DNA of 64,000 nucleotides, taken from positions 153,521-217,520 of the forward strand of contig JAKMXF010000363.1 of NCBI GenBank assembly GCA_024704765.1, in the 5' to 3' direction. Of the stretch, positions 25,085 to 56,400 are shown one piece after another; position 1 is the first letter of the stretch, and every line of letters starts with the position of its first letter. Source of the stretch: Oopsacas minuta. Lineage: Eukaryota > Animalia > Porifera. The notes beneath the pieces were generated by a model, which worked only from the letters and a program-made list of their open reading frames with translations, did not search any database and had not been told where the DNA came from. A program made the position numbers and the translations under genes.

Positions 25085-25965
25085 CGAAATGTACTGATAA
25101 TTCTATAAAGAAGCCTCTATCTTTACGATCATCATTTTTCCTATGATAGAAATTGAGTATATTCGGCCAGTTTAGTACCCTTTTACTTTCTAGTACTTGA
25201 TATACAGAAAAATCATAGTTTGACCCTGACATCTGTGTAAATACTCCAAAATGGTGTTCAAATGGATTATTTTGTATAAAAGATGATAATACATAAGAGA
25301 ATCCACATTCTCCAGTCATATATTCTACAAGTTTTGGTAGAGCAATGCTTGAAACTATCTTGTACAGAAAATAGCTCTTTGTTGTCAGATGGACGATGCT
25401 AATTGCATCAACCATATTCCAAACTTCCCATTCTTGGAGGATCTCTACGTCACATTATTTAGTGTTTATGTCATCGAAGCTATAGACGATGAATTTCCTC
25501 TGCTCTCCTTCAAATACATCAACGCACTGTTCAGTTGCCTATATAGTACAATACCATAAAACATATAATACTACAAGTCGAGTATTTGACACAACTTGAC
25601 ATACTTGGATCTGTAATCACGATCTAATTGTCTCTATCAAGCCTTGGATATTTAATAGCGTGATCTTTAAGACGATCAGGGTAACCAGGAAGATATTTAG
25701 GAATTGGACATTTCTTCAATGTAGCCTCTATTGATCGTATCTTCGTTTGGCCATCAGTTTCAGGATAAGTTTGCTTTGTCAACTATATCATCAGAATCAA
25801 AGTGCTTAGCAGAAACCAAAATGTTTTCATTGTGTGAAGATCTATAATATAATTCATAATTACGTAATGATAAATTAATCCTCAATCGTAGAATTATCAC
25901 TTAATTTATATCCAAGTTCTAAAGAAATACATAACATATCTATGAAGAAATCGTTTCTACTAATG
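25085..25965 (-). pseudogene. Internally deleted P-element transposase remnant (THAP piece plus catalytic C-terminal piece)
   Basis: GFSYVLSSFIQNNPFEHHFGVFTQMSGSNY resembles the P-transposase QDxLExxFxxxRxxxGxN motif; ILVSAKHFDSDDIV...LKKCPIPKYLPGYP resembles the C-terminal part of a THAP domain. Confidence 0.65.
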
Positions 25966-26252
25966 AACGATATCTTGGGGCCCTGAAGGAATGTGAAACA
26001 CTGCAACATCAGTATGATCATGCTAGTATCCAGTGGTACATTAGTGGAAACGATTTCTTCATAGATATGTTATGTATTTCTTTAGAACTTGGATATAAAT
26101 TAAGTGATAATTCTACGATTGAGGATTAATTTATCATTACGTAATTATGAATTATATTATAGATCTTCACACAATGAAAACATTTTGGTTTCTGCTAAGC
26201 ACTTTGATTCTGATGATATAGTTAACACCCAAACTCATCTTGAAACTGATGG
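25751..26252. repeat. Hairpin with ~215-bp arms and a ~75-bp loop (second copy ~47378-47886)
   Basis: ccatcagtttc...tttctactaatg (25751-25965) is the reverse complement of cattagtggaaa...gaaactgatgg (26039-26252). Confidence 0.9.
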
Positions 26253-26285
26253 ATCTACATAGTAGTGTTATTGTTGTTAGAGAAG

Positions 26286-26415
26286 ATGCCTATTATTGAG
26301 AATCGGTCCACTGACTTTGACTATGGGAATGAAGGTTATTATCGAAAATTGAAACCATTTGTGAAAGACACAGCGAAAATCTTTGTAGGAGGTCTACCCT
26401 ACAGCACTAGTGATG
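26286..26415 (+). pseudogene. Inverted copy of Musashi exon 1 (long variant)
   Basis: ATG...MPIIENRSTDFDYGNEGYYRKLKPFVKDTAKIFVGGLPYSTSD G|GTGAGT; no downstream RRM exons were found on the plus strand. Confidence 0.75.
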
Positions 26416-28425
26416 GTGAGTTAATTTTGTTCATTTTTTCATTTTGAACTTAACGCAATGCATTTTATAAACAGCTGATTTGAACTGTAGTTTTCGCAGC
26501 TAACTTCTACCTCTAATTATTTCTCAATCCCTCATGCAGTTCTGTAGTTATGAATATTCAAGTTCTCAAATCAAACATAATTCCATCTTTAATCGCCTAA
26601 TTATTCACAAAATATATTTAGAAAATATGCAAACAATTATTAATGAATAATATACTTGTTTATCATCCCCGCCTGCCCCATTTAATCTCCCTCCTCGGCA
26701 ATTTATTATATTTTATTACATATCTTTATTTAATACTTATATTCACAGATGAGCATCTTCGAAACAAGCTAATTATTTAACACTAGCGCCCTTCGCTTGC
26801 TAGATCGCTGAGCAGTGTGGCTAATCATGTGATTTTTCGAAAATTCAAAAAGGTGGCAATGGCATCATAATTTTGTCAGGTGTGAATTTTCGTCCAAGAC
26901 TCAAACCTGTCCGAGTCAGGCCCAAACACCCCTCCCTGTATGGCAAAAATCAGCCCCGGAGTGTGCACTAATATTTTATTATTATTATTTAAATTGTACA
27001 ATAATTCAGATTATAGAGAGGAAGTGAATATTAGTTTTCCATATACAGTGTAAGTTTAATACGAACACCAACCGACCGGACCGTACGGTTAAAATTTATT
27101 CGCCTTTCCGGAGTTCATAAACCGAAGTAATATCCATTGAAGTACGATTGTAGGGACCTGATTATGCATATATAGGTATTATTCTTTTTACTGTGCCGAA
27201 TATACGTTAATAGGGTGCACCAGTATTGAAATGCATGCCTTAGCCTAGGCTGCGCAAACGGTCAGACTACTCAGGCTATGGGATGACCACTTTACTATTG
27301 CTCAAGCAATCGCCCGACCGCCATTTAGCCTCATCCGCCGCACTTGCTTAGTTCGTGTACTGTGCAGACTACTATTTAGTCAGTCAGTATTGGTATCATG
27401 GCTAATTTTTTTTAGTTTTTATGCCAAAGTTTTTGGAAAGTGAAAGATTTTGAATTTGGAGAGGTGAAGAATTATTTTCAGTTCCAAATGGTGTCGTAAT
27501 TATGGTTTATAATATTTTGCTCAAGGCTACAAAAGTTGATAAGTGAGTATCAAATAGTCGCCCCTGATATCGGTAAAACTATGATATTTCCTGTTTAGGT
27601 TGAAAAGACTTACTAAAGGAGGTTCACCTATGTATTTCCCTATCATTTATGTTTATAGGTGATTTTCACTCAAATACAGCCTTGAAAATATACCCTTTAC
27701 ATTAATCTATGTTATTTAATCTCAATTGATCTCTGTTGGTTTGTTGTTGTTTGTTGTTTTCTCTGTTGTCAAGAATAGGATTTATGGTTTGGTATTTTGT
27801 AATTGCAATCGCAATCCAAAGATGTTGCATACCTCTATATTTATCGCGATTGGCAAAGTGTAGGAAACTACGCAACTTTCTCTTCTCAAAGTGCCGGTTT
27901 CATAAGTACTCCTCCCCTTCCATAAATATACCCCAGCGTGAAGAATACTGTGTAGTATTCTTCCGAGGGAAAAATGATTCTGTGTAGTCAAGTTTCCCCT
28001 CTTCAAAGAATTTGTAGATATTTCTTACTAGACATAATCTATATTATTAAATCTCAATGATTGTCTGTTTGTTTGTATGTTTGTTTGTTTGTCCGTTGTC
28101 AAGGAAAGGATTTATGGTATGCACTTTTGAAATTTCCGCATAACTATGTATTTATCGTGTTTATCAGGGAAGTATAGAATTCAATAAAACTTGACTAAAT
28201 ATATCGTACATACTGAATCCGATTTTCACACTTTGGATTAATCATATGTAAATTTATTGTTGTTTTTATGAATATAAAGTATAAAAATCTCAATATTGAG
28301 GTATAATCATACTTTCAACGACTATACTGGAGTAATCGAGTATTCTTGGTCTGAAAATTGTAAACAACACCAAAATTAATAATCTCAATTGTTGTTTGTC
28401 TGTTTGTTTGTTTGTTGAATACTTC

Positions 28426-28476
28426 GAGGCGCAATGCTCCGAGTTCATCGCGAAGCGACGAGCCAAAGGCTCGTAG
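28426..28476 (+). mobile_element. 3' end of a DINE-1/Helentron-like interspersed repeat
   Basis: GAGGCGCAATGC..GAGTTCATCGCGAAGCGACGAGCCAAAGGCTCGTA, with stem-loop CGAGCC-AAA-GGCTCG, occurs at 28426, 38396, 41179 and 50049 (+) and 17745-17796 (-). Plus-strand copies lie downstream of a (GTTT/GTCT)n microsatellite. Family assignment is inferred. Confidence 0.5.
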
Positions 28477-29100
28477 GTAATTAATTCCGAACGATAAGAT
28501 TATTGGTTTACTTGTTAATGACTGATACATACAGTTTAACATCGTTCGATCGAACTCGGTAAATAAGAATATCATGACATGTTAAAGAATAAATATTTGA
28601 ACTAAATCGAGCCACTACCCACAGTTTGACGAAATTCTCTAGTATTCACGCAATGGGCATAAATCCCGGGGATATATCCCCCACTTTTTACACAAGGATG
28701 CGAATGGTCTATATAATATTACCAGCATACAATCGAAACAGTTTTATCTTATCACCTATTTCTTAAAATATTATTCCTTCTCAGATTGTGAAGAAAGTGG
28801 GATTTACTTTCATTTTACATCGGTTTTTTCTGACGATATTTCCGTGCAATGGAATAGTGAGAAATCCGGTTTCTACTTAAATATAACTCAAATATTTGGC
28901 ATAAGTATGCCAAATGAAAATATCAATTCGAGCGGACTTAGTTCAACTAGGGTTGTTATGAGCGAAATTCGTAACAACAGGCTTAAATTCGATAGCTTTT
29001 GTCCTAAAGGGTGTAATAAATAACTAAATTATAACCGGAGTTTCATTGTATTTGTTGCAGTCTAGTGCACATGGACCCGAGTACTTAGTCTAATTGGACT

Positions 29101-29827
29101 CAGGGATGTCCTTCTCTAATTATAAGTATGGGAGCGATATTTCAAATTTCAATTTCAATTGAATATATCCTAATTTCTAATACAAAATTCAAACAATATA
29201 CTGGTAATTGAATTAATAAGATAAGATATGAATAATATCAAAGGCTTAATAGTAAATCTGAAAATAGAGTTCTAACAAGTGATTGAGTACCCAAAATTAT
29301 TTAACTAATAATACTTCCAAATTTCTTCTTGTTTATGGGGCTCAGAAATTTTGGATTTCAATCCATGGATATCTGTTGCTGAATTATGATGCAAGAGCCA
29401 AGATTTAGAATATTCCAATGGTCTCCAAATAGTCAGTGGTGGACCATTAAGCTGGATAAACAGCAAAGAAGAAACGTGTTCTATTGTAAGCAGGGTTCGT
29501 TTCTCATCCAATATGATATTCATTTGATTAAACACCTTTTCGCATTCAGATGAGTTGCATGGAATAACTTCTACGATATTTTCACGGCGCTATAAAGTAA
29601 ACATTTGCTCTCTCAACTCGACTTAATTATATTTGGAACAAATTTCAATTGATTTCAAATATTGATTGTATGCTACTGTAGATATCAAGTACACACATTC
29701 AGTAACTTGTGAAGTAATTGTTACTTGCTAATTTGATTTGTTAAAAAAAGTATGAGAGCGACACTCCCGCTACCTGAAAAAGTATGGGAGTGGTGCTCCC
29801 ATCCGCTCCCACAGCAGGACACCACTG
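29101..29827 (-). mobile_element. Non-autonomous hAT element with the transposase C-terminal dimerization fragment (copy 2 at 50723-51454)
   Basis: Termini CAGGGATGTCC / GGACACCACTG; perfect 8-bp TSD ATTGGACT. Encodes VIPCNSSECEKVFNQMNIILDEKRTLLTIEHVSSLLFIQLNGPP. Confidence 0.9.
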
Positions 29828-30625
29828 ATTGGACTTAGACTAGTTCAAGTGCTATTAGAACCTAACTCTACGATAATGGGTGGATTCAATAACTCAATTA
29901 CGTTATACACGATTATCAAGGGTTCTGAGGGTCAATGTCCGAACTTGGGAATAACTAATCAGCATTTACGCAGGTTTATTAAAAACAGCCGTGATTATTA
30001 TATCAGAAATTACAAGATTTTGATGATTGGAAGAGTATAAGTTATCAAAATAATCAACATATTGTAAAGGCAGGTGTTTGTGGCTGTATTTCTTTTCTTC
30101 TTTAGGAAGAATAACTATATATACATATACCGACCGTTCTAAGATTTTGCTAATCTATTTACAATTTTACAATATTCAGTACTTCTAGCATTGACAGATA
30201 GTAAAATATTTCAGAGGCTAATTTCCTGTAGCTATTGTTTACAACAACTATATAGAATCAGGCTTTATTGACATTCGTGATATACGTATACAACGTAATT
30301 AAGTTATTGAATCCACAGCATTAGCTTGAAGTTGGATTCCAATAGCACTTGATCTAGTCCAAGTCCAATTAGACTAACTACTCGGGTCCAAGTGCACTTA
30401 GACCAGTCGAACTGCACTTGGACTGCAACAGATATATATTCTACCTCTTTAATGTATAAAATAGCCACTTAGCGTAGAGTATATATCAATTTTGTTAGAA
30501 TTTTGGTTAATTTAGTTAGCTTTTTGATTATTTTTGTTAGACTTTTGAGTAATTTTGTTTGACATTTTACAAATTTGGTCGACTTTTAGCGAATTTTAGT
30601 AGAGGCAAGTCTGACATTAAATATA

Positions 30626-31943: not shown

Positions 31944-32235
31944 TTATGTCTCGTTTAGGCCAATTCTATGTGCCACTCTACGTATATATTCCATGGCTAG
32001 TGTATGAAAGTATCCGGATATCCGACTATTAAGTCGTTCTTCATTAGTTTTATCCTTTTGTCGTTTTGGAGGCTTTTCTCCAGCAATAAAGTTAGTCTGT
32101 GTTTTACTTATACAAGTTTTTGTTCTCGCTTCAATGCAATGATGAAACGCCAAATGTTGGGATGGTAACATCCGATGGTAGCATTGTATGAGCGATGCCA
32201 AGCCTCTACTGCGTTAGTAGTCCTGGGAATTCCCC
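31944..32235 (-). pseudogene. Mutator-like (MULE) transposase C-terminal fragment
   Basis: GIPRTTNAVEAWHRSYNATIGCYHPNIWRFIIALKREQ, then a frameshift, then ...AMEYIRRVAH; matches the RTNNxxEGWH...HPxIWxFIxxLKxEQ motif. Confidence 0.8.
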
Positions 32236-32531
32236 CTGAGGAATTTCCTTTCTCTTAAGGCCAATCTTTATTTCCAAGCAGTTACCCAATTGCTTATCTG
32301 GCATGTAGGTGCTCATTAGTTCTCTTCACTATTGTCAACCCCCTTAGTCTGTAATCTTGGTTTACACTGAAAATTTGGAAGGTATCTGTAGTCCACATCC
32401 GATAAACTATACTATCATTTGTATAATTAGCAATGACGACACCTCGTAGACCACCACCAGACTATAACTCAGCATTGTCCATGCCAACAGCTAATACGTA
32501 CTATAGAGCTCTGCACAGAGAAAACTCTGAG

Positions 32532-34074
32532 TTACGAATCAATTTGGGATGGATGACCAGTAAGTCTAAGCATTATTTTGACGGATTCTATCTTCGCTTC
32601 CAATTTAGCAATTTGTTTTTTCAGTAGTAAAACTTCTTTAGCTGCATATTTACTCTTTTTTAATAATCTATTCAATACCATGGCTGCATCCGGCCGATCA
32701 TGCCAAGTCAAATTCACCATTTCTAAAATGAGAGAGGATTGAAATGGAAAGGTTTCTAGAAATTCTGTTGGAATCTTGCTCTCTCTAACACCACTGAGGA
32801 TATTACACTTTTCAATGTCTGTTGTGAAGGGGTAAAATAGTACTACAGGAAAGCAAGGGCAGAACTGAAAATATCAGTCTTAAAAGAGTAGTGATTAGAA
32901 ATCAGCTGTTCTGGAGAGGTATACAGTCGTGAGCCGAGCTTGGTTGTATGCACAGAACTACTATTTGATAGCGTAGAAGATCTCACAAAACTTTCACTAT
33001 CATTGACAATTTCCTTTGAAATTCCGAAATCACAAATTTTTAATCATTTTCGATTACCCGTTAATAATATATTGGTCGGTTTGATATATCTCTATGTACA
33101 CAATTCTGTGAGTGTAGATACTTTAGACCTTTATAAAACTGGATGACGTAATCGTCTACAATTGAGATATCATCGTCGGTTAGTTTGCTTATTTCTGTCG
33201 AGACTTCATTTCGTTCTCTAAGCCATTCTTGTAAATTTGTTTTACACAGTTCAAGCTGTATACATATCATAGGCTGCAATACAGGCTGGAGAGGAGGAGC
33301 AGGAATTAGTGGTTGGCGGTGTCAATCTTGTGCTACAATACGCGTTTCAGGTTGTTGACGGGTTGGTACGTGTTGCCGATCAAGTCAAATTTCTTTTCTA
33401 AAACCTGGCAATGCTTGGGGAAGAAGAATAACATCAGAATCAGAGCTAGAATCAAATTTTTGACGCTTTGCTAACTGTATTTCTCTCGACCCATTTGAGT
33501 CATTAGAATACATTATGTTGCTATCGACGAAACGTAACAAATCTGTTTCAACGGAGTTTTCATCTTTTTGTCCAGAATTATATCGTTCTTCACCATGATC
33601 CTTGATAGAATCGTCATAGTATTTATTAGAGTTCCTACTTAGGCATCTAGTTAATCCTGTGTCGTTGGAATCATCTTCATGTCCCAGATTAGACATTTTA
33701 GATACTGAAGAGGCAGATTCGGTCTCACCAGCAGTGCTTTCGATTTCGCTAGTACCATTTCCAGCATCCTCTCTTTTATCAATTTCGTAATCTAACCAGA
33801 CACAATAGTATCTAATCACATTTTCATGACTCAACTTGGCTAGCAACTGCACTTCTCTCACAAATTCGTGTGGATTCCCCCTCAATTTAATCTTTTTAAT
33901 CGCATACTCACTATTATCCAGCTTATTTATAGCTCTCACTACCACACCATGACCTCCTTTGCCAACAGAAATTTGTCTTCCATACTCTAATTCGAGTCTT
34001 GAAGTATGCCTAACGTTTCTTGTTTCACCAATTATATTAGATATGCTAAACTGACTCACATTATAAGGCTGTAC
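32532..34074 (-). pseudogene. EIF2AK: eIF2-alpha kinase-like catalytic domain, intronless and disabled
   Basis: Contains GKGGHGVV, YAIKKI, REVQLLAKLSHENVIRYY, a long acidic kinase insert, CIQLELC, HRD(I), KICDFG, GSRLYTSPEQ, KTDIFS, LFYPFTT and RPDA. In-frame TGAs at ~33385, ~33322 and ~33044; a 2-nt insertion in HRDIKP; one further frameshift. Confidence 0.9.
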
Positions 34075-35516
34075 CATAGCCTACTAAACATAAGGCCTGT
34101 TGTATGATATTTTGAGGCACTGTATTATAGTACCATGGATATTCAATATCTATAATATTTTGAGGCAGTTGGAATCCATAGAAATTTGTGCGATTAATTT
34201 AGTTCCAGTTTGACTTGATGATAATCTCAGTTATTACCAGATGTATATTATTACAACTCATATTACTAACTCCTCTTTTTCCATTACTTCAGTTATTTTC
34301 ATCCTCAACTTATTTGAATCAATAATATAAATTTTGCAAAAAAAGTCGTAGCGAATAAACAAATATGATAGAAAGTCAGAAATATACATTTTGAAAAGAG
34401 GTTATATTTTAGATGAAAACTAAAGACCTTCATATACATCTGGTAATAACTGAGATTATCATCAAGTCAAACTGGAACTAAATTAATCGCACAAATTTCT
34501 ATGGATTCCAACTGCCTCAAAATATTATAGATATTGAATATCCATGGTACTATAATACAGTGCCTCAAAATATCATACAACAGGCCTAACAGTAACTCGA
34601 ATTTTTGGCACCAGGGATGCAGTATTAGAAGAAAGCATTTATAAACATAGTTTCTTTATTGCAGAAAAATGCATTTTTGGCTGAATAAATGTATTACATT
34701 TTTGTAGAACTGCAAATTTTACACAAATAAATGGTAAAAACTTTTAGGAATGTGTAAAAATATGTCTCTAGTAAGCATTTATTTTGTAAATATATCATTC
34801 TTTGATGCTTTGTAGAACGTTAAATATTGCAATTATCAACTCAAAGTGAATAAATGAAATGATCTATAGATCCTTTTTACAAAATGTCACAAATTTGTCA
34901 TTCAAAAGTTGGCTCGTTGTTGAGTTAAGGTAGAGACCATGGATGGCAATTTTTTATGAATATTCAATTATAACTCGAGAATCATTTCAATTATCGTAAA
35001 ATCAGGATAGTCAATTTATACTATTTACCCGACTTCCCATACGCTTGCAATACATTTTGATATGATCTCTCTCACCAATGTGACGATACCCGTATATGGT
35101 CATTTTCAATATTCTGCAATACACTTTAATTCATAAAATTTACCATCCATGGTCTCTACCTTAACTCAACAACGAGCCAACTTTTGAATGACAAATTTGT
35201 GACATTTTGTATAAAAGGATCTATAGATCATTTCATTTATTCACTTTGAGTTGATAATTGCAATATTTAATGTTCTACAAGACATCAAAGAATGATATAT
35301 TTACAAAATAAATGCTTACTAGAGACATATTTTTACACATTCCTAAAAGTTTTTACCATTTATTTGTGTAAAATTTGCAGTCCTACAAAAATGTAATACA
35401 TTTATTCAGCCAAAAATGCATTTTTCTGCAATAAAGAAACTATGTTTATAAATGCTTTCCGCTAATACTTCATCCCTGGTACTTTTACTGTTAGGCCTTA
35501 TATTCAGTAGGTTATG
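34075..35516. mobile_element. Galileo-like (P superfamily) foldback element
   Basis: Termini CATAGCCTACTAAACATAAGGCC / CATAACCTACTGAATATAAGGCC (reverse complement); 7-bp TSD GCTGTAC (34068-34074 and 35517-35523); inner ~350-bp arms at 34610-34960 and 35130-35480. Confidence 0.85.
34094..34586. mobile_element. Nested hairpin MITE (~155-bp arms) in the left arm of the foldback element
   Basis: taa|GGCCTGTTGTATGAT...ATCATACAACAGGCC|taa; the corresponding position in the right arm reads TAAGGCCTAA. Confidence 0.85.
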
Positions 35517-36389
35517 GCTGTACTCCATACACTACAGCATCAGAATCCGGTATAGCTAGACTACCTCTATGCTCACCAGCTGACAGTCTAGCAGAAGCTA
35601 TGGATAACTCTTTTCTGTACTCCCATCTGAGGGTAATAGGCGGTTCTGTATCCTTCATGTCAAAATATTCTAGATCTGTCTCCAGAGTAGGTTGCTGCTT
35701 CTGCCATACGAGTTTAACTTCAAACTTATCTCCCTTCATGATATCACGAGGCTGAGAACGGGTATAAGGCACTTCATGATGTTGTTGTATCAACTCTGCT
35801 TCAGGTTGATGAGCTATATAAGTCATATATATTAGACGTAATTGTACTTATCATACAAGTACTAGTTTAATCATAAGCATAACTCACATTTTCGAAAGTT
35901 CGTGCGTGGAAACAGTTTAGGCTGAATCAATGGGTTTGTAGGAGAATTAGTATCCACAGTATAAGAGGGAGGAGATCTTATTTCAATATCTCTGAACCTG
36001 GAATCACTAGCATGTCTCGTAATAGGGGTATGAGTTGGTTTAAACGGGAGCTGTCCTGGCTCACTAGGAGGGGGAGGGGGAGAGGGAGAGGCACGAGGAG
36101 CGTACTGCATCTGAGAGGATTGAGAGTACCCGAAAGGAGTTGTGGTATGGGATAGGGGGGCTGATATAGTATAATGGGCTACTTTTGGATGGAATAAGCC
36201 CGATTGTATGTTACTGGTTTCAAAGAGTTGATTTGTAGGCCCCTCCTGTACATAGGGTGCTATTTGATGGTTGCTAGATGAAATTAGATCTCTTCCAGCA
36301 GGGGTGGTAGGCTTTTGTTTGGGAAGAAAGTGTATCTGTCTAAACAATTCTCCTTCTAGGGCCTGTGAATAATCTATGACAATAAACAA
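35517..36389 (-). CDS. Upstream Pro-rich exons of the eIF2-alpha-kinase-like gene
   Basis: Phase-1 GT-AG intron at 35887-35814 joins ORF 35871-36389 to ORF 35512-35826. The latter joins the kinase ORF in frame once the foldback element is removed. Confidence 0.7.
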
Positions 36390-37106
36390 GGAGGAAAGGA
36401 ATGTATAATCTCAATATTTGATAATAATAATAAGAAATATTTGTTATATCAGTGAAGATATATAGATTTAATGGACATATTGACGGATTCAGAGTATTCG
36501 AGATCTTCAACCATTATCCTTAATGAATTATTGAATTAATATTAGAAAATGAAAATATTCTTTGTAACAAGTATTTTAGTAATTTTTATGGCAAACAAAC
36601 AAAAAATACTAAACCCAACAAACCAAAAATTGCTAATTAGAATATTAATAAAAATATATTATATTCATGCCATAACAACGAGTCATACCTTCAGGAATGT
36701 AGGGTCGTATTGCACCATCGATTCTTGTCCACCCAACAGGAGCACTAAAGTCGTTTTTGGAGGATATGAAATGTTCCGAGTGAGTTGATGAGAGGAAATG
36801 TGTAGTCTAACTTTGCTCTCTTAACTGATCGCCTATATAATAGATAATTTGATTCAAACATGCTTCCCTCACCCTTATAGTAGTAGGTGTTATCATACGT
36901 AGTATATTGTCTACATGGCATCCAATCAAATCGACAACAATATATATATGTACATGTATAGAGCACGAACAGGATCCAAAGAACTGTTCAGTGAATTGGG
37001 CCCATCGGCCACCATACATGTCTCATAAGATTATCTTTCGCTAATTCTGAATCAAATTTATCCCATACATGTAGCACTCATATCATACCTCTGTACTGAT
37101 GTAACT

Positions 37107-40100
37107 TTCTCCTCCTTCTCAGAAGGAGATTGTCGGATCCGATCGAATTTCGCATTCAAGTCAGCATGCTGACCCTCAATAACTCTCCCGATTTCTCCTT
37201 GGCTAGAAGAACCTCTTGGTTATTCGAGCTCTCATGGATATTCCCATCAGAATATGCTGGAAGTTGACTCGTATGCAAAGGCTAATAGTTTCAGAAATCA
37301 GTATATTAATGTTATTCTCATTCTAAAACAAGAGTTATACAATTTCATCTATGATAAATAGGAATTAATAATCAAATAGATATTAAACAATTTGGAAATT
37401 CCTCCAAGACTATAATCAGTGAATGAATTGTTGATGGATTAGGAGTATAATGTCAGTTCATTAATATCATTACTTGCATAATTAAGCCACTGTTATACAA
37501 GTTTGTTGCGTCACGCTTAAGTGGTCAATTGTGGCCGACACAATGAATATTCGAGTCAGAAAGTGTCAAAATTCTATGTATAAATGAATGATTAAGTCTT
37601 TTTCTACGCTATCGACAGCACCAATTGAGTTAATAGTGTCGTATTAACAAATTTTCAATATTCCTCTACTAGCCAAATTACGTGTGTTAAATAAATCATA
37701 TTGACTACCTCTAGTTGTAAGAGTATTCAATTCTTGCAGTCTAGCATTATAACTTATTAAGAACATAACTATGGGAATAAGTCTCTAGTGATAAATACTA
37801 ACTAGCAAGTAACTCTATAACTAAAGGGGAAATGCTAATGGTCATCAGCTAGCTAGGACTGAGCTTGGACTCACTGCGTCGCTCTTCTTCTTTGAATGCT
37901 GGCCAGAATACGAACACTTCCTTTTCGTGTCCGTATCGAAATTTCTATAGGAATTAGACACCAATAAAATACATCTATATTTGTAAGTCTCAATTGTTGT
38001 TTGTTTGTTTGTTTGTCTGTTGTCAAGGCAAGGATTTACGGTATGCAATATTTAAATTGTCCATAACTATGTATTTACTGTGTTGTGTTGAATTCAAAGA
38101 AATAGAATTCAATAAAACTTCACTAAAGTATATCCAACATGATGAATACGATTATCACACTTTTGGATTAATCATATGCAAATTTATTGTTGTTTTTATG
38201 AAAAAAAGTAAACAAACTAGCCAAATCTCAAAAATTAGGTAGATACGTCCTCTCAACGGGTAAAAAGGGGCTTGATCTTAAAAATACTTCAATAACATAT
38301 ATGTCATATACGTATGCTTGTGAATTATATTGTTTTTAATATATCTATATTGAAATACTCAAACGGGCCGTCATTTGGAGAAAAATAGATACCGTGAGGC
38401 GCAATGCGTCGAGTTCATCGCGAAGCGACGAGCTAAAGGCTCGTATATATATATATGACACACATGCACAGATAATTAATCTATACTATAGTCAGAGGGA
38501 CCGGATGGATTATGGATTGGATTATGATTTGGATCCATCCGCCCCTCTGACAATAGTGGGGTATCTCTAATTGTACAGATTCCCTAATCGTCCACCTGCC
38601 AAAAATATGAGTACTATGTGTACAATACAGTAAGTTTGTATATTGACCCGGCATGGACAAGTCCGATTCTTGGACGAAAATTCACACCTAAGACGGAAGT
38701 ATGCTAAATCACATGATTGGGCAATGTCAGCCAGTATAGGTGTTAGATGGTGGCAATTAAAATCACAGGTACCCGATAGTGATAATGAAATACTGCCCGA
38801 CCTCATGCTTAGATGGATTGCATCTGCCGAAACAGCAATATATTAATAGTGTGCTGAAAGATAGTCAGAAGCGGCACAAGGGAGGGCCAGGGGCATGCGC
38901 CCCACCTCATTAATTTAAGTATGTCCCAGCTTAATAACCTGTACCCCACCAGTAATGGCTGGCTAACTCCGCAACTGAGGATAGTTCATACAATAATTGT
39001 TAGTATACGTAAGTCTGTACCTTGAACGGATTTTATCAAAGGGCTGATCTTATTTACAGCTTGATGCTGAGGAGGAATATATTGTAGAGGTGAAGGCAGA
39101 TTAGGTTGGAGTTGAGCCTGAGGAGAATATGGAATACCTTGATTCATGAGATTGTCTAGGAGCTGAGATCCTTGTGAAGGAGATTGAGTAGTAGTAGTAT
39201 CATAATGCTGTACTCCTTGCTGATGTAGCTGGGTACTAGCTGTAGATTCATGGTAAGGTTGGATAGATTGAGGAGGGCTTGTTTTCTCACTATCAGGGCA
39301 GAATTTAGACATTCTAGAATAGATATAAAAATATGGATAAGATTCTATATATGTAGTATCTGTTATCAACCTACGCAGCATATGGTTGTTGTTGTCTCTC
39401 TAGTATACACTCTCTATGCACAGAATTCCTACGGTAAGGTGACGTAATAATTCCAATACTGTGTCGCTCTCTTTGATGATTCTCTAGCTCATGAAGTGTA
39501 GAGAAGGACTTATCATATTGAGTGCATAAGAATAGACTGTTATGGTCCAGAGAGTTGTTTCTATCCGTGCTAGTATGTTCAGTTGCCCTGGGTATAACAG
39601 CTCCCTCAGATGGTAGGTATACAGTAGTCTGTGTGGCCAGAGGATCCGACTTATAGGATAGAGTACAAATATTCCTAATAGAGTGTTCTATGTCATGAGA
39701 CCCCCACAATATACGTATGTTCAATTCTGCATCTATTTTCTTGCGGAATTCTTCTATCGATGCAGTTACTGTTGTTAATATTTTGAAGTTAACATCTCCT
39801 AAGGTGTTTGTACCTAATCACACAAGATTTATAAATTGAGTTACTGTACATGGAAAATATTTATTTATTTATTTATTACCCAACTTTGGCTGATTTAGAT
39901 TGTACGTCTCGTTGAGAAGATTGATATTTCTAGCACACATATCTAATTCATGCAATCTTGCAATCAATATTTCATCCAAGTCTTGGTGAACTTTCTCCTC
40001 CTTCTCAGAAAGAGATTGTCGGATCCGATCAAATTTCCCTTTCAAGTCAGCATGCTGAGCCTCAATAACTCTCTTGATTTTCTCCTTGGCTAGAAGAACC

Positions 40101-44363: not shown

Positions 44364-44475
<112 letters not shown>

Positions 44476-44963
44476 AGTCTTGGACGAAAATTCACACCTG
44501 ACAAAATTATGATGCCATTGCCACCTTTTTGAATTTTCGAAAAATCACATGATTAGCCACACTGCTCAGCGACCTAGCAAGCGAAGGGCGCTAGTGTTAA
44601 ATAATTAGCTTGTTTCGAAGATGCTCATCTGTGAATATAAGTATTAAATAAAGATATGTATTAAAATATAATAAATTGACGAGGAGGGAGATTAAATGGG
44701 GCAGGCGGGGATGATAAACAAGTATATTATTTTATTAATTATTGTTTTCATATTTTCTAAATATATTTTGTGAATAATTAGGCGATTAAAGATGGAATTA
44801 TGTTTGATTTGATAACTTGAATATTCATAACTACAGAACTGCATGAGGGATTGAGAAATAATTAGAGGTAGAAGTTAGCTGCGAAAATTACAGTTCAAAT
44901 CAGCTGTTTATAAAATGCATTGCGTTAAGTTCAAAATGAAAAAAATGAACAAAATGAACTCAC

Positions 44964-45093
44964 CATCACTAGTGCTGTAGGGTAGTCCTCCTACAAAGAT
45001 TTTTGCTGTGTCTTTGAGAAATGTTGATTTTCGATAATAATAACCTTCATTCCCATAGTCAAAGTTGGGAGATCGCTCATCAATAACTGGCAT
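44964..45093 (-). pseudogene. Third copy of Musashi exon 1 (open frame; fourth copy at 47920-48049, +)
   Basis: MPVIDERSPNFDYGNEGYYYRKSTFLKDTAKIFVGGLPYSTSD G|GTGAGT. Confidence 0.75.
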
Positions 45094-46122
45094 TTTTTCT
45101 AGCAACAACGTGCAGATAATAATAAGTAATATAGGACTAAAACTATGCAGGTGCCAAAAAAGGAAAAAATATAAAGTTTCAAGCTTTATATAGTCGAAAG
45201 GGTTCACTGAAATTTGATATTTTTCCTATCATCAGCCTTGGGTACAATTGCAGAATCTTACACCCCCCAACTATTTTAATGTGGTCAAAAATTCCTATAT
45301 GCACCGTTCAAGAACTCGTTGAGAAGAGTTGATAGAGCTAAGAACTCCAAATCGGAATAAAATTGACAAAGTTACGAAAAATTTACTTCCTAAGCCAAAT
45401 CCTATGATGGGGGAGAATTTATTACTCACTACAGTCAAATTGTATTGATTTATACATTACAATTACCATAGGAATGCTCATACTGTTGATATTGCGGTTA
45501 TACACGCTTGTTACTCTACTCTTTCATGTTCATTTGTTTGCTATCCAGTGTTTTCACTGCAGGTAATTCTTGTTACTTTAAAGGAAAGCAGGTCACAAGA
45601 TAATGCTGTCTGCAACACTAAATATTATACAGTACAACATTGCATTTAATATTTCATACAGTGGCACCTCGATAATTCGAACCTAGTTAATGGAATTCCC
45701 GACATGACGCATTATTTGCATATATTCTGTTTCCTTTAATCGTAGTTCAATTTGTATTACTCCGGCCTTGGCAAACCAATTTTGATCTTTCGTTTGTGTT
45801 CGTATCAATGTTAGAAACAATTCATGTACTATTTAATCGCATAGTTATTGATCCAGCTTCTCTCCAGGTGCCTTAGTAATGTTGGAACAAAGTTTTCATG
45901 GATTTATACTTATAATAGTGGACAGAATATTATATATATATGACATCCCATGGCTGGATATAATACTATGGGTAGTAGTTATAATTGGAGTAACTAATTA
46001 GTATTAAGCTTTCTATCTACTACTTTAACTACAAATCTACAATATAACAAGTACTGCTACAAAAGAAACACCAAAGCAGAACTATGATACTAATTACAGG
46101 TTACTGATAACTATCAAAACAG

Positions 46123-49600: not shown

Positions 49601-52064
49601 TCTGTGTAGTCAAGTTTCCCCTCTTCAAAGAATTTGTAGATATTTCTTACTAGACATAATCTATATTATTAAATCTCAATGATTGTCTGTTTGTTTGTAT
49701 GTCTGTTTGTTTGTCCGTTGTCAAGGAAAGGATTTATGGTATCCACTTTTGAAATTTCCGCATAACTATGTATTTATCGTGTTTATCAGGGAAGTATAGA
49801 ATTCAATAAAACTTGACTAAATATATCGTACATACTGAATCCGATTTTCACACTTCGGATTAATTATACGTAAATTTATTGTTGTTTTTAGGGATATAAA
49901 GTATAAAAATCTCTATATTGAGGTAGAATCATACTTTCAACGACTATACTGGAGTAATCGAGTATTCTTGGTCTGAAAATTGTAAACAACACCAAAATTA
50001 TTAAATCTCAATTGTTGTTTGTCTGTTTGTTTGTTCATTGAATACCTCGAGGCGCAATGCGCCGAGTTCATCGCGAAGCGACGAGCCAAAGGCTCGTAGG
50101 TAATTAATTCCGAATGATAAGATTATTGGTTTACTTGTTAATGACTGATAACTACAGTTTAACATCGTTCGATCGAACTCGGTAAAATCGAATATCATGG
50201 CATATTAAAGAATAAATATTTGAACTAAATCGAGTCACTACCCACAGTTTGACGAATTTCTTTAGTATTCACGCAATGGGCGTAAAATCCGGGATATATC
50301 CCCCACTTTTTACACAGGGATGCGAATGGTCTATATAATATTACCAGCATACAATCGAAACAGTTTTATCTTATCACCTATTTCTTAAAATATTATTCCT
50401 TCTCAGATTGTAAAGAAAGTGGGATTTACTTTCATTTTACATCGGTTTTTTCTGACGATATTTCCGTGCAATGGAATAGTGAGAAATCCGGTTTCTACTT
50501 AAATATAACTAAAATATTTGGCATAAGTATGCCAAATGAAAATATCAATTCGAGCGGACTTAGTTCAACTAGGGTTGTTATGAGCGAAATTCGTAACAAC
50601 AGGCTTAAATTCGATAGCTTTTGACCTAAAGGGTGTAATAAATAACTAAATTATTACCGGAGTTTCATTGTATTTGTTGCAGTCTAGTACACATGGACCC
50701 GAGTACTTAGTCTAATTGGACTCAGGGATGTCCTTCTGTAATTATAAGTATGGGAGCGATATTTCAAATTTCAATTTCAATTTCAATTGAATATATCCTA
50801 ATTTCTAATACAAAATTCAAACAATATACTGGCAATTGAATTAATAAGATAAGATATGAATAATATCAAAGGCTTAATAGTAAATCTGAAAATAGAGTTC
50901 TAACAAGTGATTGAGTACCCAAAATTATTTAACTAATAATACTGACAAATTTCTTCTTGTTTATGGGGCTCAGAAATTTTGGACTTCAATCCATGGATAT
51001 CTGTTGCTGAATTATGGTGCAAGAGCCAAGATTTAGAATATTCCAATGGTCACCAAATAGTCAGTGGTGAACCATTAAGATGGATAAACAGCAAAGAAGA
51101 AACGTGTTCTATTGTAAGCAGGGTTCGTTTCTCATCCAATATGATATTCATTTAATTGAACCCCTTTTCGCATTCAGATGAGTTGCATGGAATAACTTCT
51201 ACGATATTTTCACGGCACTATAAAGTAAACATTTGCTCTCTCAACTCGACTTAATTATATTTGGAACAAATTTCAATTGATTTCAAATATTGATTGTATG
51301 CTACTGTAGATATCAGGTACACACATTCAGTAACTTGTGAAGTAATTGTTACTTGCCAATTTGATTTGTTAAAAAAGTATGAGAGCGGCACTCCCACTAC
51401 CTGAAAAAGTATGGGAGCGGTGCTCCCATCCGCTCCCACAGCAGGACACCACTGATTGGACTTAGACTAGTTCAAGTGCTATTAGAACCTAACTCTACGA
51501 TAATGGGTGGATTCAATAACTCAATTACGTTATACACGATTATCAAGGGTTCTGAGGGTCAATGTCCGAACTTGGGAATAACTAATCAGCATTTATGCAG
51601 GTTTATTAAAAACAGCCGTGATTATTATATCAGAAATTACAAGATTTTGTTGATTGGAAGAGTATAAGTTATCAAAATAATCAACATATTGTAAAGGCAG
51701 TTGTTTGTGGCTGTATTTCTTTTCTTCTTTAGGAAGAATAACTATATATACATATACCGACCGTTCTAAGATTTTGCTAATCTATTTACAATTTTACAAT
51801 ATTCAGTACTTCTAGCATTGACAGATAGTAAAATATTTCAGAGGCTAATTTCCTGTAGCTATTGTTCACAACAACTATATAGAATCAGGCTTTATTGACA
51901 TTCGTGATATACGTATATAACGTAATTAAGTTATTGAATCCACAGCATTAGCTTGAAGTTGGATTCCAATAGCACTTGATCTAGTCCAAGTCCAATTAGA
52001 GTAACTACTCGGGTCCAAGTCCACTTAGACCAGTCGAATTGCACTTGGACTGCATCAGATATAT

Positions 52065-52322
52065 ATTCCTGTGCTACCTCAGCACATAGATTAGTTAGTG
52101 TAGTAATCCTGATAGTATGAGTTGATTTATCAGCTGTTGTAATTAACTGTAAAGGCTGTGAATTAGCATTAAGGACTTGATACCAGCTGTGCATGTCTTC
52201 CTTTAAGTTTGGCTCAAGTTCAAGGTCCAATTTTAAGTTTGTATCAGCTCTCTCTAAGTGAATTATTGAATTACTATACTGTAACAAGTGCTTGTTATAT
52301 AATCTACAAATAGAGAGATTTC
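52065..52322 (-). other. Possible PH-like exon truncated by the end of the duplicated block
   Basis: Acceptor catacag|GAAAT; ...EDMHSWYQVLNANS resembles a PH C-terminal helix. The ORF runs into duplicated non-coding DNA at ~52068. Confidence 0.3.
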
Positions 52323-52709
52323 CTGTATGCATTGCAGGTACTAATAACTGTACTGACTATAGACACAGCATTGAAATCACTAGACATAGTATTCCTTATA
52401 TTTTCCGTAAACGGTGCAGAGCCAAAATATAATAGATTATACCATCGGGTGTGCACTGAGTAACAGGGTTTAGATTTGACTCAATGTGATACTTTTAGAA
52501 TACATTTTCCCAATTAAAATTGTATTAGCTTATCGAATTTTCCAAATTTCATTAGGGGTTTAAATCTATAGAAAAACTTTCTGTATAATTTTCCGCATAT
52601 TTTGTAATACAAATAAGAATTGAAATTTCCATAACTTTGTATTATAATTACTCAACTATATTTTTGAGGAAATTAGCGTTGTAGCAATAGTTTGGTTGGA
52701 ATAATATTC

Positions 52710-53410: not shown

Positions 53411-56400
53411 CATAGACTCCTTAAATAGAAGGACTAGTATCTCCTATGTTCGGAGCCTGGAACTTCGGTCCCATCATATCTTGGGTTGTACACATGCTAA
53501 AACCTTCATCTTGGTGTCTAACATGGGGTTTTGAAGGACAAGGTATTAATTTTTTATACTTTTGACCATCTAAAAGGTCACCTGAAGGTCATTTGAAGGT
53601 TAAAACACTCAAAATAGCAGGAATTTATCTAAAATTTTGTGTATTCTTCTAATCAAATGCAGGGTAACGAGACAAACACAGTCAAAATAGTATACATTGT
53701 GATTATATAAGTCAAAATGACAGTTTAGATGCTAAAATTAGCACGAATGAATTAATAAGGTCAGTATACAAAGCAAACAAAAGGCAAAAATTGCATGTAT
53801 ACACGGATATCACTGTGAACAGGGATATTACTGCAACTTAGTTTTGAGATGAGAGTTTTTCCTTCCTTCTCAAACAGCCAAATTGTCTTTCTATCACTAT
53901 TATCAAGCACAAAGGACTTCAAAAGTATGTTTGACAAAGCAACACATGCTCCTTGAATAATAGACATTGCACTGTCAATACGAGATAAGGCTTGGCTGAG
54001 GTGAGCTCGACAGCAGTGTAAATTGCAATTGACAAACAGTTTGTAAGCTGAATGAACGGAATGAACGAAATGAACAGTTGAGATTAGGGGTACAGTTAGT
54101 CCACCCCTATTTAAATTAGTGAGAAACTCCGAATCAGTTAGATTGTCATCATCATCTTCAGCTTCGGCCGTTGAAATATTAGTTCGGAATTTTCGTTCCA
54201 AATATCCAGCGATAAATATTACTTTATGTTTGATTGTGTCATTACTTTGAACAAGATCTTCAGTCTCTAAAATAGTGATATCAAATTGATCTTCTTCTAT
54301 GTGAATGCTACAAGTGCAAGGTACGTCACTATGAGGCTGTGGGGTCGAATCGTATTTCAAAAGTGCGCGAAGATTCTTGGTTTCTGCAGCTGCATTGATG
54401 TCAACGACGTCTATATAGAAATTTCCTGCACTGCGTTGTCTGGCTTGGCCAAAAAACTTCTCTAGAGCTTCATCCGCGAACACTCCAGGCAATACATAAC
54501 TGAAGTTGTGGTGTGTCAACAACAACTCTGCTGCTTGGACATTTGCTCTTGTAGACAGTACAAATGCATATGCAGTCTGCTTTGTGAGTTTCTGTGTCCG
54601 ACCTTGTCCACCTGGCCATGCACAAGACGATATGACATCACAAGTTTCATCGAGTTTTTTGAAACTTGTGCAATTCTTGGTCCACGGTTGACGACACTCA
54701 TCACGCGTATTTATACCAGAAAAACTGCCTTTGACATTCATCATATGGAACCAGTCAGTGATGAGTTTAACAAAAATAATGGTCCCTTCACTAATACTGA
54801 GCATATATTTTGAAGTTGAAAGAGCAGCAACAGTTTTGTCATTGAATATCTGACAAACAAAAGGCACACTTTGTCTTTGCAAAGGCTTGGGATACACAGC
54901 TGTGTATGTAATCTTGGTCAAACGGATGCAGTTCTTCCTGTCTTCAATGTAAAGTGCTTCTATGTCTTACCAACGTGCTATGTGTGATTTACCATCATTT
55001 GTGAATGCGAGTTCCTTATGAGGCACAGTTATCCAGTTATTCCTAATGTTTTGAATAAATGGACATAGTCATAAGCGAGAAAAGCGTGAGAGTTTAAGAT
55101 GTCTATAAACACTCTACCAGCTCCACCTAATTTAGCATAGACTGAGACATTTGTATTGCAATTGTCACATATACAAGAAATTATAGTGCCACCAGCATTG
55201 CTAACTGCTGCGAGAGCTTCGAGTAATATACCCTTGAGTTGATCTGAATTGAGTTTCGCGACAGGATGAATACGTAGAATATATTTAGAGCCACCAAAAT
55301 GGCATACAACCTCGATCACTAAAGCATGTGTTGCGAGAACTTCAGCGTCACCAGATCTATTTTGAGCATAACCAACAACATGACCACCAGAGTACCTAAG
55401 AGTTTCTGTTAGCTTCACCTCATCAAATAAAATGTTTACAAGACGCTGCTTGGGTTGAAGCTCTTGAAGAAGTTGCCTCAAGTTTTCATCATGTAGACTA
55501 TTAGAAAGAAGTTTCTTCAACAGTTCTACTCGAGGTAATGCAATAGCACCAGATTTTCGTAGCATTCTATACGCAGCTGGTGAAATGTTATGAAGTTCAG
55601 CAGCAAGAACATAAAGATTTCTATCAAAACGACGGGCTTTTGGTGCAGTAAGTGATAACCCGAGCTGAGCATACAAAAATTGATAATGGGGAAGTTCAGA
55701 GCAGCACATACGACCCAATTCCTCAAGGACATTTTTCACGTAGTCTGTGTCTTTGAATTCGTACTCTGGAATACTCGTTAAAATGCTATTGAATTGTGAC
55801 CATTTGCTGGTGAGGCTATTCTTCTGTAGGAAACCAGCTTTGGAAAATACGATTTAGGTATTTCCTTTCCATTTTTCTCAACACATTTAAGGAATAAAAG
55901 TCCAAATGGTGATTTCACATGTGGTGAATGTAGAAACTGGACGACTGAACGTCTTTGTGCGTCAGCTTTGAACATGTAAACATCATCACCATCATGAATA
56001 ATAAGATGATTTTTGGAGAGAGGCTGTTGGATGACTGTACAAAAAGAATCAAAGTCACCAATTTGATCAAGAGCGTTAGTTCTAAGGTCTTCATTTCTGG
56101 CACGTACTTCTGCCGAAGAACTTGTACTCCTAGGGGTTGAAGAGTCTTGCTTTAAACAGGACTTTGGGACACCAGGAAAAATGGATAGAGGTTGGCTAGG
56201 TCGTTTACCACCTTTAACTGTGACCCATTCACAGTCAAAATGATGGTAACAAGCATATATTTGTTTAAGTTGTAACAGACTGGAGCGTTCATTTGGCATA
56301 GCATCAATCCAACGATCTCGTTCATCTTCATCACTTGGAAATTGTACTACTTTTGTGTATGGTTCACACCTGTAATTTCCACGACATCCAAATACGTTAC

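Follow-up and report, generated by a model that had tools for sequence, protein, structure and literature searches.

A probable P-superfamily foldback element, interrupted by a second foldback, in a kinase-like pseudogene of the glass sponge Oopsacas minuta

DNA transposons that belong to the P superfamily differ in the length of the target-site duplication that they make: it is 8 bp for the P element, and 7 bp for 1360 and Galileo (PMC3698922). Galileo (PMC4168063, PMC3688188) combines 7-bp duplications with a foldback appearance, has transposase-less copies that consist of two arms, frequently shows nested insertions, and carries long, internally repetitive ends on its coding copies as well. 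BuT5 of the Drosophila repleta group (PMC3698922) is a size-homogeneous, noncoding element of ~1 kb, which has only its terminal sequences in common with an autonomous element of the THAP/P type, the interior being unrelated, and which is presumed to be mobilised in trans; it has 3-bp inverted ends, 16-17-bp sub-terminal repeats and 8-9-bp duplications, and it does not fold back. In 1360 / Hoppel / ProtoP and in the P element, a transposase with THAP and RNase H domains is found together with short inverted ends. Hairpin architecture is also known from Drosophila Foldback (FB) and from Tm1 of root-knot nematodes (Mutator/Foldback; PMC3169594); elements of the FB type have 9-bp duplications, tandemly repetitive arms and transposases of the MULE type. 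Here we describe a 64,000-nt stretch of the genome of the glass sponge Oopsacas minuta (contig JAKMXF010000363.1), henceforth the window, in which a noncoding foldback element, designated B, interrupts a kinase-like pseudogene and is itself interrupted by a second foldback, designated A. All coordinates are positions in the window.

The published genome of this sponge comprises 365 scaffolds and ~61 Mb at 36% G+C (PMC10280926). DNA transposons make up 15.44% of it and unclassified repeats 18.01%, and 1.22% falls in "Other (Mirage, P-element, Transib)", a class assigned automatically by RepeatMasker; no P family is described (PMC10280926). It is plausible that the family reported below is undescribed in this lineage, where P elements have so far appeared only as that automatic class.

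The insert occupies positions 34075-35516, and its tips are CAT (34075-34077) and ATG (35514-35516). These termini had been proposed in an earlier annotation made from the letters of the window alone, hereafter the sequence-only reading, together with a perfect GCTGTAC duplication and near-identical inverted arms of ~350 bp. The duplication is indeed present on both flanks, the computed chance of a perfect 7-bp duplication being 6e-5 per element, and the arms (34610-34954 and 35135-35480) measure 345 nt and are 96-97% complementary. The features of the insert are as follows.

34068-34074, no strand: GCTGTAC, the left of the two copies of the 7-bp target-site duplication; a single copy stands in the empty site on contig C55
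34075-34098, plus strand: left tip of foldback B (CATAGCCTACTAAACATAAGGCCT), with the nested A between it and the remainder of B
34093-34098, no strand: AGGCCT, left copy of the 6-bp duplication of A and also part of the end of B; four other copies of A have AGNNCT
34099-34581, no strand: nested foldback A, 483 bp, GTTGTATG...CATACAAC, with arms at 34099-34248 and 34432-34581 and the loop at 34249-34431
34582-34587, no strand: AGGCCT, right copy of the duplication of A
34588-35516, plus strand: rest of foldback B, ending in ...TATG, with the left arm extending to 34954, the loop at 34955-35134 and the right arm at 35135-35516
35517-35523, no strand: right copy of GCTGTAC, a perfect match to the left copy

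The strongest confirmation of the insertion is a natural empty site, found on contig C55 of the assembly that was searched (61,460,524 bases in 365 contigs). When the element and one duplicate were removed in silico, the resulting 99-nt junction was identical at 99/99 positions to this paralogous site, which is uninterrupted, contains one GCTGTAC, and is spanned by an open frame of 295 codons. On the minus strand, the excision junction reads through as ...AVVYGVQPYNVSQFSISNIIGE. In the two minus-strand frames that adjoin the insert (...AVVYGVQP, 35512-35826, and VQPYNVSQF..., 33385-34077), the duplicate appears as GTA CAG C, and these frames thus join in phase once the element and one duplicate are taken out, just as the sequence-only reading had predicted. 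Removal of the insert by splicing was considered as well and set aside, this copy being a pseudogene. The duplicate on the coding strand begins with GT and contains AG, but splicing at canonical sites would take out 13 nt along with the element instead of 7.

The sequence-only reading had treated the insert as one foldback element. The insertion is real, but it is made of two foldbacks, one nested in the other. In the genome-wide search, only the first 24 bases of the insert and the segment 34582-35516 matched the abundant family B. The intervening element A has arms of 150 nt (156 if the palindromic AGGCCT is counted) that are 100% complementary, and a loop of 183 nt; without A, the arms of the outer element B reach its tips and measure ~390 nt each. 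The relatives of A differ from family B, and four other genomic copies are flanked by 6-bp duplications of the form AGNNCT (agacct, agctct, aggact and t/aggtct); A is thus a family distinct from B, with a different footprint. Since it lies in the palindromic AGGCCT of the left end of B, A necessarily inserted after B. A 4-kb relative of A has inverted ends of 152 nt and a single open reading frame (ORF), for an OTU-like cysteine protease (PF02338, 1.7e-8), no transposase being recognisable in it; in a 9.7-kb relative, all ORFs are shorter than 150 aa. The loci L067 (C8:71500-75750) and L083 were grouped with family A.

Once A is subtracted, the copy of B in the window is 953 bp long and is 94-95% identical to a canonical copy of 1,066 bp (L003), relative to which it has an internal deletion of ~107 bp adjoining the loop. 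The canonical foldbacks of this family are 1,043-1,106 bp long (~1.06 kb), with arms of ~490-500 nt and a loop of ~60 nt, and no internal tandem repeats were found in their arms. With up to 2 mismatches allowed, the terminal 23-mer of B (CATAGCCTACTAAAYATAAGGCC) has 110 + 109 = 219 genomic matches, as against 0 for the reversed control; a metagenome scan with the same 23-mer also returned 0 matches and was uninformative. A perfect 7-bp duplication flanks 10 of the 13 complete foldback copies, and one more copy has a duplication with two mismatches. Among nine longer elements that have the same ends, the duplication is perfect in six and has a single mismatch in two. With both classes pooled, a perfect 7-bp duplication was found in 16/22 examined copies and one with 1-2 mismatches in 3 more; the 7-bp length, which the sequence-only reading had offered for checking in other copies, recurs throughout the family. 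The identity between the two arms ranges from 77% to 100% across copies, including some in which the 497-nt arms are 100% identical, and this spread of ages suggests that B was inserted over a long period and until recently. A third match to AAYATAAGG in the window, at 52394, is not a transposon end.

The evidence on the superfamily comes from longer elements that are bounded by the ends of B. The N-terminal RNase H domain of P transposase (PF21787) has at least 92 matches in the genome, and several of these are enclosed by paired ends of B, namely on contigs C73, C327, C111, C301 and C99. These coding elements are 2.7-3.4 kb long and contain a frameshifted transposase with THAP and TNP-like RNase H domains. 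In one of them (L060; 3,379 bp, B ends, duplication gatggat), a THAP domain (PF05485, 4.6e-13) is followed on the same strand by the TNP-like RNaseH_N domain (PF21787, 5.5e-7). In another (L061), an ORF of 475 aa aligns over 471 residues, at 46% identity (3e-146), with residues 465-925 of an ORF of 950 aa that lies intact at another genomic locus and has the domains THAP, RNaseH_N and the GTP-binding insertion domain (GBD). All nine long copies are colinear with this 950-aa ORF from residue 1 to ~930, and because each of them is frameshifted, an intact coding copy of the cognate element was found in 0/9. Genome scans with PF12017 and PF21789 were uninformative, these models being short.

The inverted ends of the coding partners L060 and L061 consist of 32 + 25 nt (~60 bp). 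It is only the terminal 59 bp that B has in common with its partner, the identity being 95% with one partner end and 77% with the other; beyond these bases, the B arms are unrelated to the partner. Taken together, the transposase domains, the 7-bp duplications throughout the family, and the fact that the same ends bound elements with THAP and TNP-like RNase H domains support the assignment of B to the P superfamily, which had already been suggested by the sequence-only reading. B has no coding capacity, is homogeneous in size, and has only its ends in common with the coding partner, which are the attributes of a miniature inverted-repeat transposable element (MITE). From these sequence features, we file B as a P-superfamily foldback MITE, with a structure that recalls Galileo.

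Uninterrupted ORFs of 950 and 877 aa with THAP, RNaseH_N and GBD domains were observed at L039 (C310:923027-926398) and L032 (C332:96939-100310), respectively, and are candidates for active or domesticated P-type transposases; no inverted ends were visible beside them within the short loci examined.

The sequence interrupted by B is likewise a member of a repeated family. The kinase-like locus is one of at least seven paralogous loci with 79-98% identity, and its N-lobe has its best matches among solved structures in GCN2, PERK, HRI and PKR. The paralogue on contig C222 (L072:1132-3057) is an intact, single-exon ORF of 641 aa, whose 19 highest-ranking solved-structure matches consist entirely of eIF2-alpha kinases (PERK first, at 6.8e-47, and HRI), with MAP kinases next at 1e-18; the N-lobe in the window ranks its matches likewise. 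The host family thus fits the eIF2-alpha kinases, with PERK/HRI/GCN2/PKR closest and with a large insert in the N-lobe. No obvious sensor domain was seen in the 641-aa ORF. The parts of the interrupted copy and its lesions are listed below.

35517-35826, minus strand: open upstream frame (...AVVYGVQP) in the kinase-like pseudogene that B interrupts, with its stop codon inside the element; continuous with the downstream part in C55
33385-34074, minus strand: downstream open frame, with the kinase N-lobe (GKGGHG, AIKK) and the kinase insert (Pkinase, 2.2e-10)
33083-33090, minus strand: extra AT in GAGATATATC (paralogues GAGATATC), a frameshift between HRD and IKPTN in the catalytic loop; also in C55
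33044-33046, minus strand: TGA stop just before LKICDFG, where four paralogues have TTA (Leu)
32841-32846, minus strand: 2-nt insertion and a G-to-T change that makes TAG, a frameshift (FLELF in three paralogues); also in C302

At all three lesion points the paralogues are in frame, and the copy in the window is therefore not intact through the catalytic core. Tiny introns or an alternative genetic code were ruled out as the explanation of the stops by the same in-frame paralogues, and by the intact 641-aa paralogue with its single exon. The sequence-only reading had B splitting an eIF2-alpha kinase gene, which is locally true, inasmuch as excision restores the frame; nonetheless, this copy was already dead, with three lesions, and is one of at least seven. 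On the minus strand, the terminal CAT of the transposon (34075-34077) reads as an ATG in phase with the downstream kinase frame (M-VQPYNV...), for which reason an ORF finder reports a 230-aa "gene" that starts inside the element. Homology to the intact gene on C222 ends 31 nt short of the insertion site; thus, the upstream frame comes from a different repeat module, and the lineage of the window and C55 copies is chimeric.

The resemblance to Galileo calls for a comparison of B with each of the described systems, and the Galileo-type label given in the sequence-only reading should be regarded as tentative at most. The 7-bp duplication and the foldback architecture are common to both, and so is the occurrence of transposase-less two-arm copies and of nested insertions. 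If B were a true relative of Galileo within the same clade of the P superfamily, its foldback structure would have been inherited and not convergent. The target sites offer some agreement with this, since the sequence symmetrised from the 16 sites with perfect duplications, weakly palindromic and roughly G-T/A-T-W-A-A/T-C, has G and C at positions 1 and 7, respectively, like the GTANTAC of Galileo, although positions 3 and 5 disagree, being T/A in B and A/T in Galileo, and the sample is small. The length of the duplication does not discriminate, as 1360 (PMC3698922) also makes 7-bp duplications. The hallmark of Galileo, namely that the element encoding the transposase itself has inverted ends that are internally repetitive and long (hundreds of bp to more than 1 kb), was not found in L060 or L061, in which the ends are only ~60 bp, and the B arms are unique sequence without internal tandem repeats. 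We thus regard common descent of the foldback structure with Galileo as unlikely. The overall pattern of B resembles that of the P-derived MITE BuT5 more than that of Galileo: B too is a noncoding, size-homogeneous element of ~1 kb that has only terminal sequences in common with a THAP/P-type element and would be mobilised in trans, unlike BuT5 in its ~500-nt complementary arms and its strict 7-bp duplication. Its coding partner, with THAP and RNase H domains and short inverted ends, resembles 1360 / Hoppel / ProtoP and the P element; of these, 1360 agrees with B in its 7-bp duplications and the P element differs from it with 8. An origin of B outside the P superfamily, either as a hAT element (8-bp duplication) or in the Foldback/MuDR group, has very little probability. 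A G does precede both duplicates in the window, allowing an 8-bp reading (GGCTGTAC) at this site alone, and foldback architecture is classically tied to the FB element, with which, as with Tm1, B agrees in its hairpin. However, the eighth base is mismatched in other copies of B, which rules out the hAT-like duplication, and with 8 bp the inverted ends would fall out of register; FB/MuDR duplications are 9 bp; and the ends of B bound coding elements with THAP and TNP RNase H domains.

It may also be asked if B disrupted a functional kinase, with the other lesions being assembly errors, in which case the insertion would be a knock-out or a polymorphic allele of consequence. Across the site there are 104 + 230 open codons, and long reads, with subsequent polishing, went into the published assembly (PMC10280926), so that some indel errors are conceivable. 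Nevertheless, the extra AT is also present in the C55 copy, which was assembled independently, the TGA results from a substitution and not from an indel, the third lesion recurs in the C302 copy, and at least seven paralogues exist, one of which is intact at 641 aa. A functional target is accordingly quite improbable, and we retain the interpretation of a nonautonomous P-superfamily foldback that entered a kinase-like pseudogene and was later hit by A. Several points weigh against this interpretation. With none of the nine coding copies intact, any transposase that now serves this exact family would be hypothetical, and the intact P-type ORFs at L039 and L032 match the partner of B at only 46-48% identity. 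The GBD in L061 is below threshold (PF21788, E=0.13; 6p5a, E=0.66), the weak stretch being nonetheless 46% identical to an ORF that scores 1e-4 to 9e-6 with PF21788. Lastly, the pseudogene status is based on one assembly. With these included, we place the probability of the explanation as a whole at about 0.88.

The following history explains the observations best. B was probably inserted by cut-and-paste, through a 7-bp staggered cut of the target, into one copy of a recently amplified eIF2-alpha-kinase-like family. Being noncoding, it was presumably moved in trans by a P-type transposase with THAP and RNase H domains that recognises the ~60 terminal bp. As both ends of B resemble one and the same end of the partner, B probably arose by inverted duplication of that single end together with unrelated sequence. 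The unrelated foldback A, with its 6-bp AGNNCT duplications, later landed in the AGGCCT of the left end of B. The extra AT is also present in C55, which is without the transposon, and the pseudogenisation thus preceded B; the order of events is pseudogenisation, insertion of B, and insertion of A. Since its host copy was already a pseudogene, the insertion is likely to have been without functional effect.

The O. minuta family provides a well-defined hexactinellid system of the P superfamily, with a coding partner, a foldback derivative of ~1 kb, a 7-bp footprint and ~110 element copies, and it shows that P elements give rise to foldback derivatives beyond Drosophila too. It should also help to annotate the 18% of "unclassified" repeats in this compact genome, and the locus offers a clean pair of empty and filled sites along with a dated order of events. 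It reveals no new mechanism, and the gene that was interrupted was already dead.

The ends of B (34075-34095 and 35496-35516 in the window) were also compared with those of the P element of Drosophila melanogaster (CATGATGAAATAACATAAGG, PMC9682801). Both have a CAT tip, and both contain the 9-mer AACATAAGG, with an offset of one base; the P element is otherwise unrelated in sequence to B, the host of which is a glass sponge, and the common 9-mer may be due to chance, given that half of the sponge copies read AATATAAGG. It is a speculative thought, and a rather doubtful one, that B is still active or was so very recently, that along with other P-type elements it could drive inversions, and that CAT plus AACATAAGG reflects a deeply conserved recognition of ends. 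If so, inversions by ectopic recombination could be expected in this 61-Mb sponge genome, as produced by Galileo and BuT5 in flies, and end recognition by P-type transposases would be conserved across animals.

The neighbourhood of the kinase-like pseudogene is a mosaic of low-copy repeats. Segments 32186-34084 and 35513-37863, comprising the kinase-like gene and its noncoding flanks, recur in at least seven loci (L071-L081) at 79-98% identity, and the repeat modules are joined differently in different kinase-like copies; a larger repeat unit may carry the kinase as cargo. The whole pseudogene region is flanked by inverted repeats of ~630 nt (26271-26902 and 44475-45108), which are 98-99% identical and 17.6 kb apart. 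A small foldback lies at 25777-25968 and 26036-26227, with arms of 192 nt that are 98% complementary and a loop of 67 nt. No CATAGCCTAC ends were found near positions 53761-55739, where the minus strand has ORFs of a different P-type transposase family (PF21787, 1.1e-15). Finally, the window has two copies of a 2.4-kb segment, at 28000-30442 and 49622-52068, with 97% identity.

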